Positions 30,696 to 39,290 of a stretch of DNA of 64,000 nucleotides are shown here, piece by piece. The notes below the pieces were generated by a model. It made no database searches. It saw nothing but the letters and a program-made list of their open reading frames with translations, and was not told the DNA's origin. The stretch spans positions 1,736,001-1,800,000 of the forward strand of contig BQFW01000009.1 in the NCBI GenBank assembly GCA_020891255.1. The letters are read 5' to 3'. A program made the position numbers and the translations under genes. Positions within the stretch are counted from its first letter, which is position 1. The number at the start of each line of letters is the position of its first letter. The DNA is from Entomortierella parvispora E1425. Taxonomy: Eukaryota; Fungi; Mortierellomycota.

Positions 30696-30963
30696 GGTGT
30701 TGCCTGTGGAAGGTGTGGATGAAGGAGAGGGGATGAGGAAACAAGATGGAGAAGAGGGAAAGGAAAAAAAAAAAAAAAAAAATATGAGAGCAACGAGGGG
30801 CACTGCCGCCGTGTGCAAATATAGAGGGTGTGGTGCTGAAGGTACGTGCAAATAGAGAAACCCGAATCAGCACGGCATTGGAACAAGGGAAGCATGCGCC
30901 TCATTCCGGTGCAAGCACATACATTGTTTCCCTATTCCTTCCTCAATTTTGCATTTGATGTCC

Positions 30964-33010
30964 ATGGCTCTCCTTCGCCTCAAGCTGACTCACAGTCAAA
31001 AGTCTGTCCACGTCCAAGTTCAAGGTTAGACTTAATGGGAACTGGGTCATTCACGGCCGGACGAACAACCGAGCCTGTTCGCGGTTGGGCCTCCGCTAAT
31101 ACAGTGGATATGATGATAGATCTTCGGCCTGACACCATCTACGCTCGGTTCCAAGAGGAGTTTCCAGAGAGTGGAGCAGAGTCAACACTACGTTGGAACG
31201 ACAGCGATGGCGACTGGATTGAAATTCACAAGAGTGACCCGGACTTTGAGGCTATCTTGTTGGCAGTAATGCAGAAGAGTGGCATCGTCCACATTCGGTC
31301 TGGGGAAACGAATGGTGTAAGTTACCTATCAATCAAAGCAAAGACTGATAGCTGGACCTTTGGCAGTGCCTGTGTGCTTCAGAAAATTGATCGATCGGTT
31401 GTGATTTCTGCTCGGATCTATAGTCGTACGAGCCGACCGAGCTCGCACAATTACTTCAAAGGTAAGGCGTAGTATCTGAACATGAGCCACTACCAGAATC
31501 TCGTAAAGATGAAACAGGAGCTCAATTGTGTTCATTGAATCGCCTCGGATAGATACGAAAAAGTCATGGACACATTTGATAATCTCAGCCGTAACATTGT
31601 CAAGTTACCTCCCATCTCCAACATCCTAATCGTCACCAAACCGGATCAAAAACTTGCCAAGCTCACGAAGGAGCTATCTATATGGCTGTTGGAGACTTTC
31701 CCAGGTATTACACTCTTTGTGGACAAAAAACTACAAGACCGGGCCTCATTCAAATACAATGAGATCATTCAACACAATCCCAGCTGGACGGATCGACTTC
31801 AGTTTTGGACTCTGGAGTGCCATAAAAATGCAAGCAAGCAGATCCATCTGGCCCTGACTCTAGGAGGCGATGGAACGGTTCTTTATACCACATGGATGTT
31901 CCAACATCGAGTGCCTCCCATTGTGGCGGTAAGTTCAGATGTAGATGTAAATGTTGAGCAAATCCTTCGCGCAGCCCCCATACTTATCATATTTTTAATA
32001 CTCCGCTCGCATGGACCAGTTCCATCTTGGCAGCCTTGGTTTTTTGACAAACTTTTGCTTTGATAGCTACAAGCCCGCTATGACCAACATTCTTCGCGGT
32101 GAAGGGTTGAATCTCAACATCCGCATGCGACTTCAATGCTCTGTCTACAAATATAGAGAGCCAGCGGACCAAATTCAACGGATGACTTCCCAGCTAGCTG
32201 CTGGCGATATATCTAGTACAAGCGACGACGAGGCTGCAGAAGAGTCGAGGAGGAACATAGAGACTCAGAGAAAAGCCGAGATATTGCGCAAAGTCAAGGA
32301 GATGGACTCCAAAGAAGGTGCCGAGGTCAAGGATCTAGGGGTGTGTCATGATAACGGACAGACTTTGATCACCCGGATCCCAAAGCCAAAGCTAGAAGAG
32401 TTTATGACGCCGACCGACTCATGGCAAGTCTTGAACGAGGTCACCGTAGATCGTGGATCGAATGCTGGAATGTTACAGTTGGAGCTCTATGTGGATGGGA
32501 ACCCAGTTACGACTATTCTTGCGGACGGACTAGTTATTGCGACAGCCACTGGATCAACTGCATACTCGCTCTCGATCGGAGGATCGCTGATCCACCCGGA
32601 TAAGAACTCGATCATTCTCTCGCCCATTGCGCCACACTCTTTGACGGCTCGACCCATGATTATACCAGGAACTAAGCATCTTCGGATCTGTGGTATGTTT
32701 CTTTGATCTTCAACCACAACTTCTTCAGTGATATGTCGATTGCTCGCACTTAACTTTATGGCCTCTTCCTTATTTGTTGAAAACTATTCAATTAGTCCCT
32801 GCCACGAGTAGGACGACAGCATGGGCATCGTTTGATGGTAGACATCGGCAGGAGCTAGGCAGAGGCGACTCTGTGATGATAACGGCGTCCAAGTATCCCG
32901 CTGCGACTATTTGCCGCCGAGACCAAAGCACGGATTGGTTCACGGGCTTGACGCAGGTCCTGAATTGGAATAGCCGAGTGCAGCAAAAGCCCTTCGACTC
33001 CCACTTGTGA
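30964..33010 (+). CDS. NAD(H) kinase (Utr1/Yef1-type) with an N-terminal PB1 domain, 519 aa; exons 30964-31024, 31120-31316, 31424-31461, 31553-31928, 32020-32692, 32796-33010
   Basis: NADK motifs TLGGDGT, FHLGSLGFL, VLNEVTVDRG, ADGLVIATATGSTAYSLSIGG, WASFDGRHR. The spliced N-terminus MALLRLKLTHSQKSVHVQVQ|DLRPDTIYARFQEEFPESGAESTLRWNDSDGDWIEIHKSDPDFEAILL has PB1 hallmarks. All five introns are GT-AG with matching phases. Total 1560 nt. Confidence 0.9.
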
Positions 33011-33872
33011 CAAGGGATTTTTACATTCATAAAAAGGGCGCTGACCGGTGGGTTCCAATGGCAGTGAATGACTCAGCTGCTTCAGATATCCTGGGAAGAT
33101 GGCCGCTGACCATCATGTACACATTGCTGGTGGACAGAAGCTATTCGTAGATATCCTTAGAAGCGCGACAGTTACAATAATTACAAGAAAACCTGAGAAG
33201 GTAATTTTGCCCATAGAGTCGTATCAGGCATCTGTGTAACAAAATCCAAAGAAAATTTCATGGGTTCTCCTTCAACAATGAGGGCGAATCTTGCGAGCAC
33301 AGTTCGCTCTTCTTTGAGGCGGCGAAAAACTGAAGGGCAAAGTACGTTGCTTTTTTTTCTTTTCTTCCACTGCACTCCCGTCACTTCACCCCCGTTATTT
33401 TTGCTACTTTACTGGAAAAAAAACTCGACAGCTGGACATGTATGAATCATATCATCAGAATTTCTAACCTATGTCTGCTTCGTAGTGCTATGTTTTAACA
33501 CATCAATGTTCCATCGGGTTGTTTAATAGAGCTGATTTGAGTTAGTAGAAAAGAGGGGAAAAAACTACTCGTCGTCCAGGTTGGAGCAAGGAGACTCGAG
33601 ATTGAGCACTGACGTTTTGAAGGTAAATGGTGGCAGCGAACGGACGGCATCAGTGTCACCCTAAAGTACGCCTCCACTGAACATACCTTGCTTGAAAATA
33701 GAATAGTGGCCCTCAACAGCTGTCAAGATCATTACTTGGGACCTTGGCTGTCAAACCAACGTAAAGGTGAGAAACACATTCAAATGACACAGACTGTTGG
33801 CATTGGACAGAGAGCTGGTTTTTGTTCGTGGGTCTCACACTTTTCGTTGCCTTTCCATCCCAGTGGAATAGC

Positions 33873-36800
33873 ATGATCCGCAATCCTCAGCTCGGATCTA
33901 CAGCTCCACAATTGCTACAACTGGAATCGCAGGCATTGCAAAGGGCAGCGGATACTCTCAATGAGGCGTGCAACCAGACCAACATCGACATACAAAGGCG
34001 AGCATGCAAAGACGTTGAAAAGCAGCTCCAGGATGTTCTTTTCCGCAACAAACAGCCGACCGACCCATTTTCAAAAGTTGTTTACCAGCAACTATTGAAA
34101 AATGTCGCGGATATTTTCGAGGAGCAAAACGCGCTCTGGAGTAGCCTGAAAGCCAACAGCAACGTCAGCAGTCTTGAGTCGGAAGCGCCAAAGCCGGCCA
34201 AGCCTGCCTCATCGAAGTCACTTTCGAAAGGTCTTCGACGATTTTTTGGTGGCCAGCGTAGTTCGCCCACACCTTCTGTCAAGGAAAAGACGTCCACGCC
34301 GCTTGTTAAAGAGAAAGCGACCGGCGTCAAGGCAGTGACTCCTTTTCCTAATCCCGCCATTTTCACTGCGAACATCACCAAGCTGTCCGAGTTTCCTTTG
34401 CCAGGCGTCAATGAACCGTTCTCATCAATCTCGCAACTGACGTTTTGCCTCAGTTTGCTCTGCTTAGCTGGCAAGGCCGGGGCGTCTCTTCCGCCAGAGT
34501 TTGAAAAGATGCTCTCTCTCAATCAGCAAAAGTGGCTTACAGAAATTGCGTGCCAGTCTGGAGAGCAACGGCGAATTCGGTCCATGTCTGCGGGGGTTAT
34601 GGTGGCGTTTATGGATGAGCGGCTCAAGTATCCAGCAATGGTCGCTGAGGTAACCTATTTGGCGCCGGTTCTCGACCGTGACGAGTATCGAACGCTACTC
34701 AATTGGATAATCGGGACAATCAAGAGTTCATCGTTGATGGAGATGCACTTATTGGAGGGACTCACTGCCATGCTTCAAGGGGCTTCGTCTGGATATCTCC
34801 GAGCTGGAGACCTTGTCTCTATCCTCACCGACCTCAATGCGTGCTACAGGGCTGTCCACAAACCATCCGTGGAAGACGTGTACCGGTTGACTTCAGCCAT
34901 TTCACATGTCTTGGATGCTATGGTGCTGACCAACGTCGGTGGATTGGATCGTGTAGCACTTCATGAGCCACTTTTGGAGTATCTGCGAGAGCTGTGTAGC
35001 CACAAGGACATTTTTATACGCTATCAAGGCGTGCGTGCATTTCAAGCGCTCCTCTGCATCTCCGATGATGAAACCAAAGCGATCAAGTATCTTCGGCGCA
35101 CTGCGGGAACTCTGAAGGCGGTTTCTACCATCGTTAGTGGTGTCAAAAGCGTGGACCTGAACAGCATTTTCAATGGATTCAAGGACGTCAAAAAGGACTT
35201 GGACGACATTTGCGATGTGATCACCAACGTGTACGACGGTGCTTCGAAATTATGGGAGACAGGCGAGGCGCTGAAGAGTATCAAAGACGGTTTCAGATTC
35301 GATCGCAAACGGCCATGGTATCCGGCTCTCAGAATCGCGGATGATCTGATCAAGGATGGACGTCTGTTGGACTTCAAGACCTTTATCTATGATGCCCCTT
35401 TTCGAATGAGCAAAGAGTTCCAGTTTGGAATTTGCATGGGCCTAGGACGGATTGCTTTGGATTCTGAATGGGACGAATCGACTCGTCGGGAGGCAGTCGA
35501 GTTCTTGATCGACATCTACAGGAATGACAACGTCTGGGACTATCACCCAGCTATCAGTGAATGGATCGTATCAATTCTTGGCCAGCTTGGAGACTCGCTA
35601 AACGCGTCAATCAGCGGACATAGCTCGGAAGCTCTGAAGAACTTGGCAGGCGACGGTGATTCCAAAAAACAAGCACAATATCAACAATATCTCAACACGT
35701 CTCGGGAAGTCGTCCCAATTCTGGCAATCACTCGGACGATCCCCTCATCCACGCTACTTCGCCAAGCACAAGGTATTCCAGACGTCGAGTCTGAAATATC
35801 TCGAATCAAGACCCGAAGCCGCGAATGTCAAAACCAGATCATCTATATCCCAGTCCAAGCTAAGGCCAGCTTGCAAGCACCTGATGACCAGCGATTCTCT
35901 CTGATGGACAAAGTCGAGGAATTTCTTGCCAGTGAGCGACAAGTTTTGTTGATCCTTGGCGATTCTGGAGGGGGCAAATCGACATTCAACAGGGCATTGG
36001 AGCAGCATCTATGGGATCGGTATGAAGAAGGCGGGCCTGTTCCAATTCTTGTCAACCTCCCAGCAATCGAGAATCCGGAAAAGAATCTTGTCATCAAGCA
36101 GTTGCAGAATCTGGATCTATCCAAGGACGATATGATTCTCGAACTTAAACGATCCCGGACCCTGATTCTCATCTGCGACGGCTTTGACGAAATCCCAGAA
36201 TCCCACAACCTTTTCAATCGCAACCTCTTTAATCAGCCTGGTCAATGGAAGGTCAAGATGGTTATCAGCTGTCGAAGCACCTATGTTGGCAGGAATTACG
36301 TCGAGCTGTTTCAGCCTCTCGATCGTAACCGTACCATTGGAGGGACCCTCTTCCAAGAAGTCGCCATTACTCCGTTTTCCAAAGCTCAGGTCCAGAGCTA
36401 TGTCCGTCTTTATGTTGACCATTATCAGCCTGTTTGGACCGTTGCACAATATCTTCAGGCTCTTGACAAAGTTCCTAGTCTTTATGAACTGGTGACAAAT
36501 CCTTTCCTCCTGATGGCAACCTTGGAGGTCTTAACGCCCGTCGATGGAGTGGAGCTGGATATCGAATTGAATGAGCTCACTCGAGTAAGACTCTACGAGC
36601 TTTTTATCAACCGATGGCTCGAACGTGGCGAGAAGAGGTCCTTCGAGAAAACTCTTGAGCCCATCGCCAGACGAACCTTGAGAGAGCTTTCAGAAGAAGG
36701 ATTTGCACAGCGCGGATTGAATTACCTGAAAAGACTGGCCGAATCAATCTACAGAGAACAAGGCGGGAATCCGATCGTCCAATACCTCCCGCTAAGTGAC

Positions 36801-39290
36801 AAGAGGTCATGGAAGGGGGAATTCTTTGGCCACGACGAGGAGGCCCAACTTTTGCTTGAAGCGAGTCCTATTCTCCGAAGCGGCCTTCAATATCGCTTTA
36901 TCCACCGATCTGTCCTCGAATATCTTTTTTCGTGTGTCATCTTCGAACAGTGCTCTAATGGCGTCGGGAAAACCAAGGAGGGCGATCATCTGATGAGGCT
37001 GCAGCACCTTGTGAAAGAAACATCAGTCATCGATTTCCTATCTGTTCGTGTTCCTCACTCGCACTTATTCAAGCAGCATCTCTTGAGTTTGCTAGAAAGG
37101 TCAAAGTCGTCTGCCAACAACAAAGGTGCGTGCAACGCTGCGGCCAACGCAATCACAATACTGGTTCAAGCTGGAGTGCCATTCAACCATGCCCGCTTGC
37201 AATGGATCCAGATCCCAGGAGCCGATCTCAGTCATGGCGAGTTTGATGGTGCGCTTCTGCATGGAGCTGACCTCACAGGAGTCACTTTCCGGAGTGCATG
37301 GCTACGGGGCGCCGACTTTAGAAACGCACAATTGACCAATGCTGTCTTTGGCGAGATGCCCTTTCTACAACTCGATTGTCCAGTCTACTGCAGTGGATTT
37401 TCACCCAACGGACAGTTATTTGCTGTAGGCCACAAGAAGGGGATCTCCGTATACGAGGCGCTTACGTGGACTCCTCTTGGAACCCTGGCCTGCGATTCTC
37501 CCGTCGTGCAGCTGGCGTTCAACCCTCTCGGTGAGAAAATCGCCTTTGCTATAGCGGAGGGCTGGATTCTACAGTGGGATCTTGGCTATGAAGAAGCCGA
37601 TGAAAGTTGGAAGAGCAGCGGGTACATTCACAGTTTGACGTACTCGCCTCTGGGCGAATCTATTCTCTGGATCAGTCTAGGATCCATATTTCTCAACGGA
37701 CACATTTGGATATGGGATACTGCAACGGGAGTCTGCTATCGGTTTTTGAAGTACGAGGATATTGATATGAGAGGAGTAACGTTTTTGCCCGACGGAAAAC
37801 AAATCGCCGTGATCGATGGCGAGAGAACGATAAGAATTTTGGATCTGGAATCTGGATGCACCACGAGCGTCCTTCAACAATCCAGCTCACTCTTGACCGC
37901 CAGATTATTGCAATGCTCTGCCAATGGACAGCGGATAATCGCTGGAAGCGGCAACAAAATCTTGGTATGGGACGTTTCAACAGGAGGGCTAGAGCGCACT
38001 TTGGTGGGACGCTCAGAATGCCCAGACTCTGAATTTATTTTGGACCTCACAATATCTTCAGATGGTGTCCAAATCGCCTCATGCGGAAAAGACGAAACCG
38101 TTCGACTATGGGATGCTCGGGATGGATCTTGTTCTCATATTCTTCGGGGGCACTCCACGCGAGTTACAACCGTATCGTTCTCACCAAGTGGACAACATGC
38201 TACGTCCGGGAGCTGCGATGGGACTGTTCGATTGTGGGATACGCAAAGTAGCCATGTTAAACCTATGGCGTCGAGAAGTGGCTTTAGGGCAATCAGTTGC
38301 TCAGCTTATTCACACACTGCGGACAAAGTGGCAATTGCTTACGCGGACGGAGTTGTCGAACTGCGCGATGGTCAAACAGGATCCGATTGCTATTTCCAAT
38401 GGAAACATTCAGCGAGAATTGATTTCATGTCGTACTCCAGGGATGGCCGTTATCTTGTCACTGGAACGGAAGGCGACTTGATCTGCTGGGACACAGTTAC
38501 GGGACTTTGTCGGCGGAGCTTTGAAGGCCATAAACGCTCTGTCTGGCTTATGACCCTGTCGCCTGATGGTCACACGGTAGTTTCAGGATCTTACAGCAGC
38601 GCTGGTCTGTGCTGGGACATGGAGACGGGAGCAACACAGATCTACCATCCACACGAGCGCGAAGCAATAACTTGTCTGGCCTTCTCCCCCGATGGGCGAC
38701 AGATTTTGTCCGCAGCTGCAGATAGATCAATTTCAGTATGGGATCGAGAGAAGAAGCAACTCGTTTTTGAAGCGGAGGCTATAGACCACGACGACAGGAT
38801 CTCGGTCGTGGCAATGTCGCCGACAGGCATTTGGCTTGCTTCAGGAGGCAATGACAACAACATTCTCATATGGAACGCGAAATCATGTTCTCTTGAATTC
38901 CTCTTGAGGGGACACATGGGTACGATCGTCAGCGCAGAGTTCTCACAGGATGAAAAGTTGCTTGCGACAGGGTGTATGAACCGCGTTGTGCGAGTTTGGG
39001 ATGTGGCGACAGGTGCTTGTAAGGCTATCCTGGAGGACTTTAATGGTGGTGTTGAAACGATCATCAGGGACCCTGTTCGCTCTGGAGTCTTTCATGTTGT
39101 CAGTCATAGCGAGAAGAATGTCTGCCGGTGGGTGATCGAGCCAAACGGGGATGGGTACAGGATGAATTGGTGCTGGGGCAGCCTTGATGAAGGGCGTCTC
39201 AGTCTGGCTGCTGTCCATACTGAGGGATCGAAAGGACTCAGCGACATCAACAGACGGCTTCTGGAACAGCGAAGAGCTCTTGAGCAGTAG
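33873..39290 (+). CDS. NLR-like STAND protein: N-terminal helical (ARM-like) region, NACHT, pentapeptide repeats, WD40 repeats; about 1805 aa, single exon
   Basis: Walker A GDSGGGKST (about 35958-35984) and Walker B LILICDGFDE. Pentapeptide run ADLSHGEFDGALLHGADLTGVTFRSAWLRGADFRNAQLTNAVF. Many WD repeats (e.g. LRGHSTRVTTVSFSPSGQHATSGSCDGTVRLWD). First ATG is at 33873; an upstream exon cannot be excluded. Confidence 0.9.
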   Translation: MIRNPQLGSTAPQLLQLESQALQRAADTLNEACNQTNIDIQRRACKDVEKQLQDVLFRNKQPTDPFSKVVYQQLLKNVADIFEEQNALWSSLKANSNVSSLESEAPKPAKPASSKSLSKGLRRFFGGQRSSPTPSVKEKTSTPLVKEKATGVKAVTPFPNPAIFTANITKLSEFPLPGVNEPFSSISQLTFCLSLLCLAGKAGASLPPEFEKMLSLNQQKWLTEIACQSGEQRRIRSMSAGVMVAFMDERLKYPAMVAEVTYLAPVLDRDEYRTLLNWIIGTIKSSSLMEMHLLEGLTAMLQGASSGYLRAGDLVSILTDLNACYRAVHKPSVEDVYRLTSAISHVLDAMVLTNVGGLDRVALHEPLLEYLRELCSHKDIFIRYQGVRAFQALLCISDDETKAIKYLRRTAGTLKAVSTIVSGVKSVDLNSIFNGFKDVKKDLDDICDVITNVYDGASKLWETGEALKSIKDGFRFDRKRPWYPALRIADDLIKDGRLLDFKTFIYDAPFRMSKEFQFGICMGLGRIALDSEWDESTRREAVEFLIDIYRNDNVWDYHPAISEWIVSILGQLGDSLNASISGHSSEALKNLAGDGDSKKQAQYQQYLNTSREVVPILAITRTIPSSTLLRQAQGIPDVESEISRIKTRSRECQNQIIYIPVQAKASLQAPDDQRFSLMDKVEEFLASERQVLLILGDSGGGKSTFNRALEQHLWDRYEEGGPVPILVNLPAIENPEKNLVIKQLQNLDLSKDDMILELKRSRTLILICDGFDEIPESHNLFNRNLFNQPGQWKVKMVISCRSTYVGRNYVELFQPLDRNRTIGGTLFQEVAITPFSKAQVQSYVRLYVDHYQPVWTVAQYLQALDKVPSLYELVTNPFLLMATLEVLTPVDGVELDIELNELTRVRLYELFINRWLERGEKRSFEKTLEPIARRTLRELSEEGFAQRGLNYLKRLAESIYREQGGNPIVQYLPLSDKRSWKGEFFGHDEEAQLLLEASPILRSGLQYRFIHRSVLEYLFSCVIFEQCSNGVGKTKEGDHLMRLQHLVKETSVIDFLSVRVPHSHLFKQHLLSLLERSKSSANNKGACNAAANAITILVQAGVPFNHARLQWIQIPGADLSHGEFDGALLHGADLTGVTFRSAWLRGADFRNAQLTNAVFGEMPFLQLDCPVYCSGFSPNGQLFAVGHKKGISVYEALTWTPLGTLACDSPVVQLAFNPLGEKIAFAIAEGWILQWDLGYEEADESWKSSGYIHSLTYSPLGESILWISLGSIFLNGHIWIWDTATGVCYRFLKYEDIDMRGVTFLPDGKQIAVIDGERTIRILDLESGCTTSVLQQSSSLLTARLLQCSANGQRIIAGSGNKILVWDVSTGGLERTLVGRSECPDSEFILDLTISSDGVQIASCGKDETVRLWDARDGSCSHILRGHSTRVTTVSFSPSGQHATSGSCDGTVRLWDTQSSHVKPMASRSGFRAISCSAYSHTADKVAIAYADGVVELRDGQTGSDCYFQWKHSARIDFMSYSRDGRYLVTGTEGDLICWDTVTGLCRRSFEGHKRSVWLMTLSPDGHTVVSGSYSSAGLCWDMETGATQIYHPHEREAITCLAFSPDGRQILSAAADRSISVWDREKKQLVFEAEAIDHDDRISVVAMSPTGIWLASGGNDNNILIWNAKSCSLEFLLRGHMGTIVSAEFSQDEKLLATGCMNRVVRVWDVATGACKAILEDFNGGVETIIRDPVRSGVFHVVSHSEKNVCRWVIEPNGDGYRMNWCWGSLDEGRLSLAAVHTEGSKGLSDINRRLLEQRRALEQ

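Follow-up and report, generated by a model that had tools for sequence, protein, structure and literature searches.

A PB1 domain joined to an NAD kinase in Entomortierella parvispora: a six-exon gene from an old clade of early-diverging fungal paralogues

Introduction

To our knowledge, no enzyme other than NAD kinase (EC 2.7.1.23) produces NADP+ de novo and, as the sole source of NADP+, it sets the size of the NADP(H) pool for fat synthesis, oxidative defence, and the NADPH oxidases (Nox). NAD kinases are homo-oligomers, and they are known to be regulated by the binding of calmodulin, by phosphorylation, and by delivery to organelles. Here, we describe a gene of the soil fungus Entomortierella parvispora E1425 that encodes an NAD kinase with a Phox and Bem1 (PB1) domain at its N-terminus. 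The gene lies on the forward strand of a 64,000-nucleotide (nt) stretch of genomic DNA (contig BQFW01000009.1, positions 1,736,001 to 1,800,000), which we refer to as the window and in which all coordinates are numbered.

The closest described enzymes are the cytosolic fungal kinases of the Utr1/Yef1 type, including a second, 721-residue NAD kinase of E. parvispora itself (P0116). They share with the PB1-bearing enzyme the core formed by Pfam families PF01513 and PF20143, the GGDG, NE..DRG, and TGSTAY motifs, the helix that precedes the core, and the C-terminal NWN.R..QK tail. They differ in having long, low-complexity N-termini that lack a PB1 domain, and the PB1 kinases form a clade separate from them (Shimodaira-Hasegawa-like approximate likelihood ratio test support, SH-aLRT, of 99). 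An NAD kinase core with an extra N-terminal domain is also found in the PTP-NADK proteins of plants and algae (PF22741) and in archaeal inositol-phosphatase/NADK fusions, but there the added domains are catalytic or regulatory and unrelated to PB1.

PB1 domains are normally carried by signalling and autophagy scaffolds and, as far as we know, act only through PB1-PB1 (or PB1-like) contacts. Atypical protein kinase C (aPKC), MEKK2/3, and MEK5 are likewise enzymes with an N-terminal PB1 on a linker, and their PB1 domains are among the top structural matches to the domain studied here; however, they are signalling protein kinases, whereas the enzyme studied here is a small-molecule (NAD+) kinase that belongs to core metabolism. 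For fungi, a detailed survey of PB1 proteins names only NoxR, Bem1, Cdc24, and CBS-PB1 proteins (PMC2121648), and we found no paper in the full-text literature that links PB1 (or Phox and Bem1) with NAD kinase.

The evidence presented below leaves us nearly certain that the locus is a real six-exon gene for a 519-residue NAD kinase with a two-faced PB1 domain and a linker, that the enzyme is probably cytosolic, and that it belongs to an old clade of PB1-bearing paralogues.

Results

Six exons encode a PB1 domain in frame with a complete NAD kinase

When the six exons between positions 30964 and 33010 of the + strand are spliced in frame, they give a coding sequence of 1560 nt and a protein of 519 residues. 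All five introns have GT..AG borders and are 91 to 107 nt long. The spliced product is identical from end to end to the public NCBI protein P0012, "NAD+ kinase [Entomortierella parvispora]", so the six-exon model is already part of the public annotation, which was made with AUGUSTUS and transcripts assembled from the strain's own RNA-seq (PMC8759367). An earlier reading of the window, made without database searches (the sequence-only reading), had proposed the junctions 31024/31120, 31316/31424, and 31461/31553, and these are exactly the ones required to give P0012. It had also stated that the open reading frame (ORF) track breaks the gene into separate pieces, which is borne out by the + strand ORFs listed between 30700 and 33300 (30846-31472, 31566-32063, 32011-32706, and 32774-33010); several short ORFs in a row are the pattern of an intron-containing gene. 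Two of its statements need revision. The fusion is not "hidden", as the same six-exon model is public at NCBI and UniProt names two orthologues, from Basidiobolus ranarum and Linnemannia schmuckeri, "PB1 domain-containing protein". Furthermore, the PB1 was said to be spread over three small exons; it is indeed encoded by exons 1 and 2, but exon 3 encodes the linker and lies outside the domain.

Both kinase families are found in P0012 well above their Pfam cutoffs: NAD_kinase (PF01513) at residues 123-252 with 80.8 bits (cutoff 25.5; E = 1.5e-22), and NAD_kinase_C (PF20143) at residues 362-487 with 122.3 bits (cutoff 23.7; E = 1.3e-35). At the level of single exons, PF01513 is matched by exon 4 (E = 6.9e-15) and PF20143 by exon 5 (E = 4.7e-28). 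The motifs G203-G-D-G-T207, N363..D368-R369-G370 (NE..DRG), and T401-G-S-T-A-Y406 are invariant or nearly so in the alignments. Judged by its sequence, the NAD kinase core is intact and has all catalytic motifs; the in-frame fusion of PB1 to a full NAD kinase that had been read from the letters therefore stands, given the spliced product and the two Pfam domains.

The predicted structure of the full-length protein has a mean predicted local distance difference test score (pLDDT) of 84.7 and a predicted template modelling score (pTM) of 0.72, with the PB1 part above a pLDDT of 90. Residues 84-89 are predicted to be disordered (pLDDT below 50), and a helix at residues 93-112 precedes the catalytic core, as it does in the Utr1-like kinases. 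The model thus predicts a disordered linker of ~10 residues between the PB1 and the pre-core helix. An acidic and helical insert at approximately residues 270-350 is variable, and disordered at 323-347. The PB1 fold starts so early (residue 3-4) that no space is left ahead of it for a mitochondrial presequence, and we suppose that the enzyme probably works in the cytosol.

Residues 1-82 are a PB1 domain

Automatic annotation shows only the two kinase domains of this protein because the Pfam PB1 family (PF00564) scores below its gathering threshold of 23.6 bits: residues 1-92 give 18.3 bits (E = 0.0024), the full-length protein 14.0 bits, and exon 2 alone 16.2 bits (E = 0.01). These scores weigh against a PB1 assignment. 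They are also one of two points in favor of the view that the N-terminus is no true PB1 but a generic beta-grasp of the ubiquitin-like type; the other is that ubiquitin, SUMO, and FERM-F1 domains come close in the structural ranking discussed below (Z 8-9 versus 9-10.6 for PB1).

The sequence profiles, however, select PB1 specifically. Among 23 aligned N-termini of the clade of PB1-bearing NAD kinases (see below), PF00564 matches 18, with a best E-value of 4.9e-07, while any other family matches at most two. One Rhizophlyctis protein of the clade reaches 23.2 bits, and the B. ranarum orthologue has a precomputed PF00564 match. When a profile of the 23 N-termini was compared with all sequences in the PDB, the top matches were PB1 domains only, in the order Cdc24 (E = 0.0017), NBR1, and then PKC zeta/iota, p40phox, and MEK5, and the OPCA motif of Cdc24 aligned column for column with residues 44-62. 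A language-model feature search with exon 2 (Atlas) likewise returned PB1 clusters. Single-sequence phmmer searches of the PDB sequences with exon 2 alone, or with the Rhizophlyctis PB1, gave chance matches only, such as PCNA and tektin. With the full-length protein as query, Atlas searches by structure and by feature yielded clusters of ordinary NAD kinases along with other NADK fusions, and no PB1-NADK cluster.

An AlphaFold2 model of the N-terminus, built with the clade alignment, has a pLDDT of 84.3 and the order beta-beta-alpha-beta-beta-alpha-beta, with strands at residues 4-10, 13-19, 43-47, 53-55, and 77-82 and helices at 24-34 and 63-74. In a Foldseek search of the PDB, the first ranks were taken by the AtNBR1 PB1 filament, MEK5, Cdc24, and NBR1, and in a structural search of Swiss-Prot the 30 best matches were all PB1 regions. 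Using VIA-align, the top 16 matches were all PB1 domains (Z 9.1-10.6, root-mean-square deviation [rmsd] ~2 Å), with ubiquitin-like domains just below. Two signatures set PB1 apart within the beta-grasp fold, the beta1 lysine and the OPCA motif, and both are present and conserved here; together with the results above, they make a generic beta-grasp a most improbable identity. The check that the sequence-only reading had suggested for its first 85 residues was favorable in structure, with a predicted PB1 fold and PB1 domains as top matches, and fell short in the Pfam score. We conclude that residues 1-82 are a genuine PB1 domain.

The PB1 domain keeps two interaction faces

The conservation of the two faces was counted over 31 members of the clade. 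K7, which lies in the strand at residues 4-10, is lysine in 27 of the 31 and arginine in a further three. On the acidic side, D48 is aspartate in 30/31; D50 and D52 are aspartate or glutamate in 27/31 and 25/31, respectively; D60 is aspartate in 23/31; and D62 is aspartate or glutamate in 24/31. In the structural alignments, residue 3 of the model pairs with residue 3 of p62, residue 16 of PKC-iota, and residue 351 of p67phox, and the aligned ranges place K7 on p62 K7, PKC-iota K20, and p67phox K355, which we take to be the canonical basic-face lysines. Since both the beta1 lysine and the OPCA motif are kept, the domain is assigned, on its sequence and modelled fold, to the two-faced type I/II (AB) arrangement, with a basic (K7) and an acidic OPCA face. 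The complete N-terminal PB1 with both signatures that the sequence-only reading had described is thus present, and both are conserved across the 31 proteins.

The PB1 domains of p62/SQSTM1, TFG, and plant NBR1 have the same fold (Z 9.0-9.7, rmsd ~2 Å), a beta1 lysine, and an OPCA cluster. They differ in that identity is only 13-19% and in that they belong to autophagy or secretion scaffolds, not to enzymes, and polymerization of the NAD kinase PB1 is something that we only infer. The p67phox/NoxR-p40phox and Bem1-Cdc24 pairs are built on canonical PB1 domains too, but theirs are one-faced (type A or B), whereas the PB1 of the NAD kinase is two-faced.

Conservation between genera marks exon 1 as coding

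The gene model is least secure at exon 1, because intron 1 has GTTAGA as its donor and itself contains an in-frame ATG ATG. We therefore compared the orthologous loci of Mortierella alpina (L001), M. claussenii (L002), Linnemannia elongata (L003), and Gamsiella multidivaricata (L004). By exact mapping, exon 1 of M. alpina and M. claussenii is 58 nt long, and the same codon is interrupted by a phase-1 intron of 95-102 nt. In L. elongata and Gamsiella, where exon 1 and its donor were read directly, the first 58 nt encode the same peptide and are followed by GT in the same phase. Conservation of exon 1 and of the phase-1 intron after it thus extends to four other Mortierellaceae genera. Nucleotide identity between genera is 59-67% in exon 1 and 57-64% in exon 2; it is 38% in intron 1 and 29-37% in the 100 nt upstream. 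The substitutions that separate the genera in exon 1 fall chiefly on the third bases of codons. Proteins of chytrids, Zoopagales, Basidiobolus, and Glomeromycota contain the beta1-beta2 peptide too, lysine included. This pattern of conservation, the bias in codon position, and the wide presence of the peptide indicate a coding sequence under purifying selection.

These observations bear on the possibility that the main product has no PB1, with translation starting downstream at the ATG at 31110 or at Met104 (31566), and that the fusion is an annotation construct or a minor isoform. The weak donor and the two in-frame ATGs speak for it. So does Met104, which opens the long ORF of exon 4, lies within an E-K-V-M-D motif conserved throughout Mortierellomycota, and has public models of relatives (P0028, P0041, and P0042) beginning close by. 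Against it stand the coding behavior of exon 1 and the kept intron phase in five genera, the beta1-beta2 homologues with lysine from chytrids to Glomeromycota, and the fact that the beta-grasp fold is incomplete without exon 1. We consider it very unlikely that the main product lacks the PB1. A PB1-less isoform made from the internal start at Met104 is conceivable, and could exist alongside the full-length product. Evidence for the use of exon 1 is indirect, as it consists of conservation and of the RNA-informed public annotation, and this counts against our gene model. Four public runs under the species label gave 0 reads against the gene at 85% likeness, and the runs listed for the source sample are DNA.

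A second in-frame ATG is found two codons 5′ of the annotated start (positions 30958-30966, ATG TCC ATG GCT). The orthologues begin with Met, then two or three residues, and then the R/T-L-K motif, which favors 30964 as the start without settling the choice.

Several public Mortierellaceae models (P0002, P0016, P0021, P0022, P0038, P0045, and P0046) join an upstream multi-pass membrane protein to the kinase. They omit exon 1, enter the PB1 at its D-L-R-P residues, and look like merged-gene annotation errors. Using tblastn, we found no homologue of the membrane protein within the window, and the merged models are therefore uninformative about this locus.

PB1-bearing NAD kinases form one clade across early-diverging fungi

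When exon 2 was searched against 1.84 billion representative proteins, close relatives were found only in NAD kinases of Mortierellomycota. Their match begins at residue 21-22, which implies that the relatives have an equivalent of the 20-residue exon 1. Using a full-length protein and a clade profile as queries, with the best 120 hits considered and candidates chosen by shared words, we could extend the set to six early-diverging fungal groups: Mortierellomycota (many genera), Glomeromycota (Rhizophagus and Funneliformis), Calcarisporiella, Basidiobolus (two copies), Zoopagales (Syncephalis), and chytrids (Synchytrium, Spizellomyces, Powellomyces, Gaertneriomyces, Geranomyces, Phlyctochytrium arcticum, and Rhizophlyctis). 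Among those best 120 hits, no PB1-NAD kinase appeared from Mucorales, Umbelopsis, Endogonales, Blastocladiomycota, Dikarya, or animals, which leaves absence unproven. A profile search weighted to the N-terminus and directed at Dikarya returned only PB1-less kinases, and the same search missed some known members of the clade.

We then placed the catalytic cores of 137 sequences in a maximum-likelihood tree (quick search, SH-aLRT support). One clade of 55, with the support of 99 given above, takes in all 39 PB1-bearing sequences; its other 16 members are gene models that are partial or cut short at the N-terminus. A separate Utr1-like clade holds the second kinases of the same species, P0116 of E. 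parvispora among them, and from Blastocladiomycota only Utr1-like kinases appeared. The Utr1-like kinases in the tree carry no PB1, in agreement with the earlier statement that characterized NAD kinases lack one. A single supported clade across phyla indicates that the fusion is old and took place on a distinct paralogue.

Two points of the sequence-only reading are weakened by this survey. The architecture of PB1 with NAD kinase is widespread in early-diverging fungi, which that reading had itself named as something that would lower the novelty. The suggested tie to oil accumulation is not supported, as clade members come from chytrids, Zoopagales, Basidiobolus, and Glomeromycota, and none was found among the listed sequences of Mucorales and Umbelopsis. 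Most of the lineages that carry the gene do not accumulate oil, and the gene is not specific to fungi that do.

One candidate was rejected as a member of the clade. The Drosophila willistoni protein P0127 (860 residues) has a very high clade-profile score and lacks a PB1; this predicted isoform contains two complete NAD kinase modules in tandem, which accounts for the score. The AlphaFold DB cluster representative M7NNT3 (445 residues) aligns over its residues 16-444 with residues 9-516 of our full-length model; judged by the models, it may have a PB1-like N-terminus and possibly extend the range of the clade. Two PB1-NAD kinase proteins are listed under each of two species names, P0047/P0049 for B. 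ranarum and P0129/P0130 for Rhizophlyctis rosea. The R. rosea pair has differing locus-tag prefixes, and may thus represent two assemblies and not one genome.

Feature coordinates and neighboring sequence

The features of the gene are collected in Table 1. A 19-nt poly(A) tract at 30764-30782, ~180 nt 5′ of the start codon, probably belongs to the promoter. The next gene downstream (33822-39290, + strand) is a single uninterrupted ORF of 1822 residues with ARM-like repeats (PF23948), a middle part resembling P-loop NTPases, a brief segment that looks like pentapeptide repeats, and an extended series of WD40 repeats. By its sequence, this predicted protein has an architecture like that of nucleotide-binding leucine-rich repeat (NLR) proteins.

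Table 1. Positions of exons, introns, and selected residues of the E. parvispora PB1-NAD kinase gene in the window
Feature	Position	Strand	Description
Exon 1	30964-31024	+	Residues 1-20 and first base of codon 21; PB1 beta1 and beta2; K7 at 30982-30984
Intron 1	31025-31119	+	95 nt, phase 1, weak donor GTTAGA; in-frame ATG ATG at 31110-31115
Exon 2	31120-31316	+	Residues 21-86; PB1 alpha1, beta3, OPCA loop, beta4, alpha2, beta5
OPCA acidic codons	D48 31200, D50 31206, D52 31212, D60 31236, D62 31242	+	Exon 2
PB1 domain end	Residue 82 = 31304	+	Inside exon 2
Intron 2	31317-31423	+	107 nt, GTAAGT..AG
Exon 3	31424-31461	+	Residues 87-98 and part of 99; flexible linker, start of helix 93-112
Intron 3	31462-31552	+	91 nt, GTAAGG..AG
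Exon 4	31553-31928	+	Residues 99-224; pre-core helix, then NAD_kinase N-terminal domain
Met104 (internal)	31566	+	Exon 4
GGDGT motif	Residues 203-207, 31863-31877	+	Exon 4
Intron 4	31929-32019	+	91 nt, GTAAGT..AG
Exon 5	32020-32692	+	Residues 225-448; remaining N-domain, variable insert ~270-350, NAD_kinase_C
Exon 5 motifs	N363..D368-R369-G370; T401-G-S-T-A-Y406	+	NAD_kinase_C
Intron 5	32693-32795	+	103 nt, GTATGT..AG
Exon 6	32796-33010	+	Residues 449-519 and TGA stop; end of NAD_kinase_C, conserved C-terminal NWN.R..QKP tail

Discussion

The gene described here joins a known enzyme to a known module in a combination that is conserved yet unstudied; the gene itself is public, and an automatic PB1 label is attached to two of its orthologues. 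We regard the architecture as solid, and as unusual for a metabolic enzyme, while its function is one that we infer entirely.

As both faces of the PB1 are kept, the domain most likely contacts itself front to back. A two-faced PB1 would make PB1-PB1 contacts with copies of itself and, carried on a flexible tether by each subunit of an oligomeric kinase, it would render the enzyme multivalent; such multivalency would favor chains, filaments, or condensates in which the making of NADP+ is concentrated or regulated. The polymerizing AB-type PB1 domains (those of the p62 filaments, the AtNBR1 filament, and TFG) are among the best structural matches. We regard self-association of this kind as the most likely role, and hold it tentatively, a little short of an even balance. 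Against it, two kept faces fit heterotypic binding equally well, as the PB1 of aPKC is of the AB type yet works in heterodimers; and in the Spizellomycetales members of the clade the OPCA loop is one residue shorter and partly degenerate, so that not every member can be two-faced.

The principal alternative is that the PB1 docks on NoxR, Bem1, Cdc24, CBS-PB1, or some other partner, such that NADP(H) would be made beside a Nox or polarity complex; this was what the sequence-only reading had proposed first, ahead of filaments or condensates. Its OPCA face could bind a type-B PB1 (NoxR or Bem1) and its lysine face a type-A one (Cdc24), and p67phox, p40phox, and Cdc24 are among the structural matches. 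Fungal genomes generally encode NoxR, Bem1, Cdc24, and CBS-PB1 (PMC2121648). The distribution of Nox can be read both ways. Nox has been reported absent from Rhizopus oryzae (PMC4206789), and no PB1-NAD kinase was found in Mucorales; conversely, it is reported in chytrids, which have the PB1-NAD kinase. Filamentous Dikarya, however, possess NoxA/B together with NoxR (PMC4206789), and no PB1-NAD kinase was found there, and Blastocladiomycota (Allomyces) have Nox, although only Utr1-like kinases appeared from them. The two distributions therefore match only in part. Furthermore, the exon 2 search of 1.84 billion representative proteins turned up no closely related PB1 except in the NAD kinase clade. 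On balance, docking on a heterotypic partner seems to us rather unlikely, and less so than the alternative that follows.

The PB1 might instead act within the enzyme, packing on the kinase core or on a neighboring subunit and tuning activity or stability. N-terminal extensions regulate other eukaryotic NAD kinases, in that the N-terminus of plant NADK2 binds calmodulin and that of human NADK is phosphorylated, and the pTM of the full-length model could be taken in the same sense. On the other hand, the linker at residues 84-89 is predicted to be disordered, and the conserved residues are precisely those of the canonical intermolecular PB1 faces. Intramolecular regulation is thus, in our estimation, distinctly improbable.

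Taken as a whole, a PB1-NAD kinase gene whose product self-assembles is the best explanation of our observations, and we regard it as evenly poised. It is possible, though somewhat doubtful, that this old second NAD kinase, either self-assembling or plugged into NoxR, Bem1, or Cdc24 scaffolds, serves as a spatially organized source of NADP(H). If true, this would be a form of NAD kinase regulation that has not been described in any organism: a PB1 module would add assembly or scaffolding as a mode of regulation different from those known for NAD kinases. An orthologue is found in the transformable fungus M. alpina, which would offer a simple test system. Retention of a PB1 on a core metabolic enzyme since before the split of chytrids and Mucoromycota would point to a conserved requirement for NADP+ synthesis to be placed or clustered.

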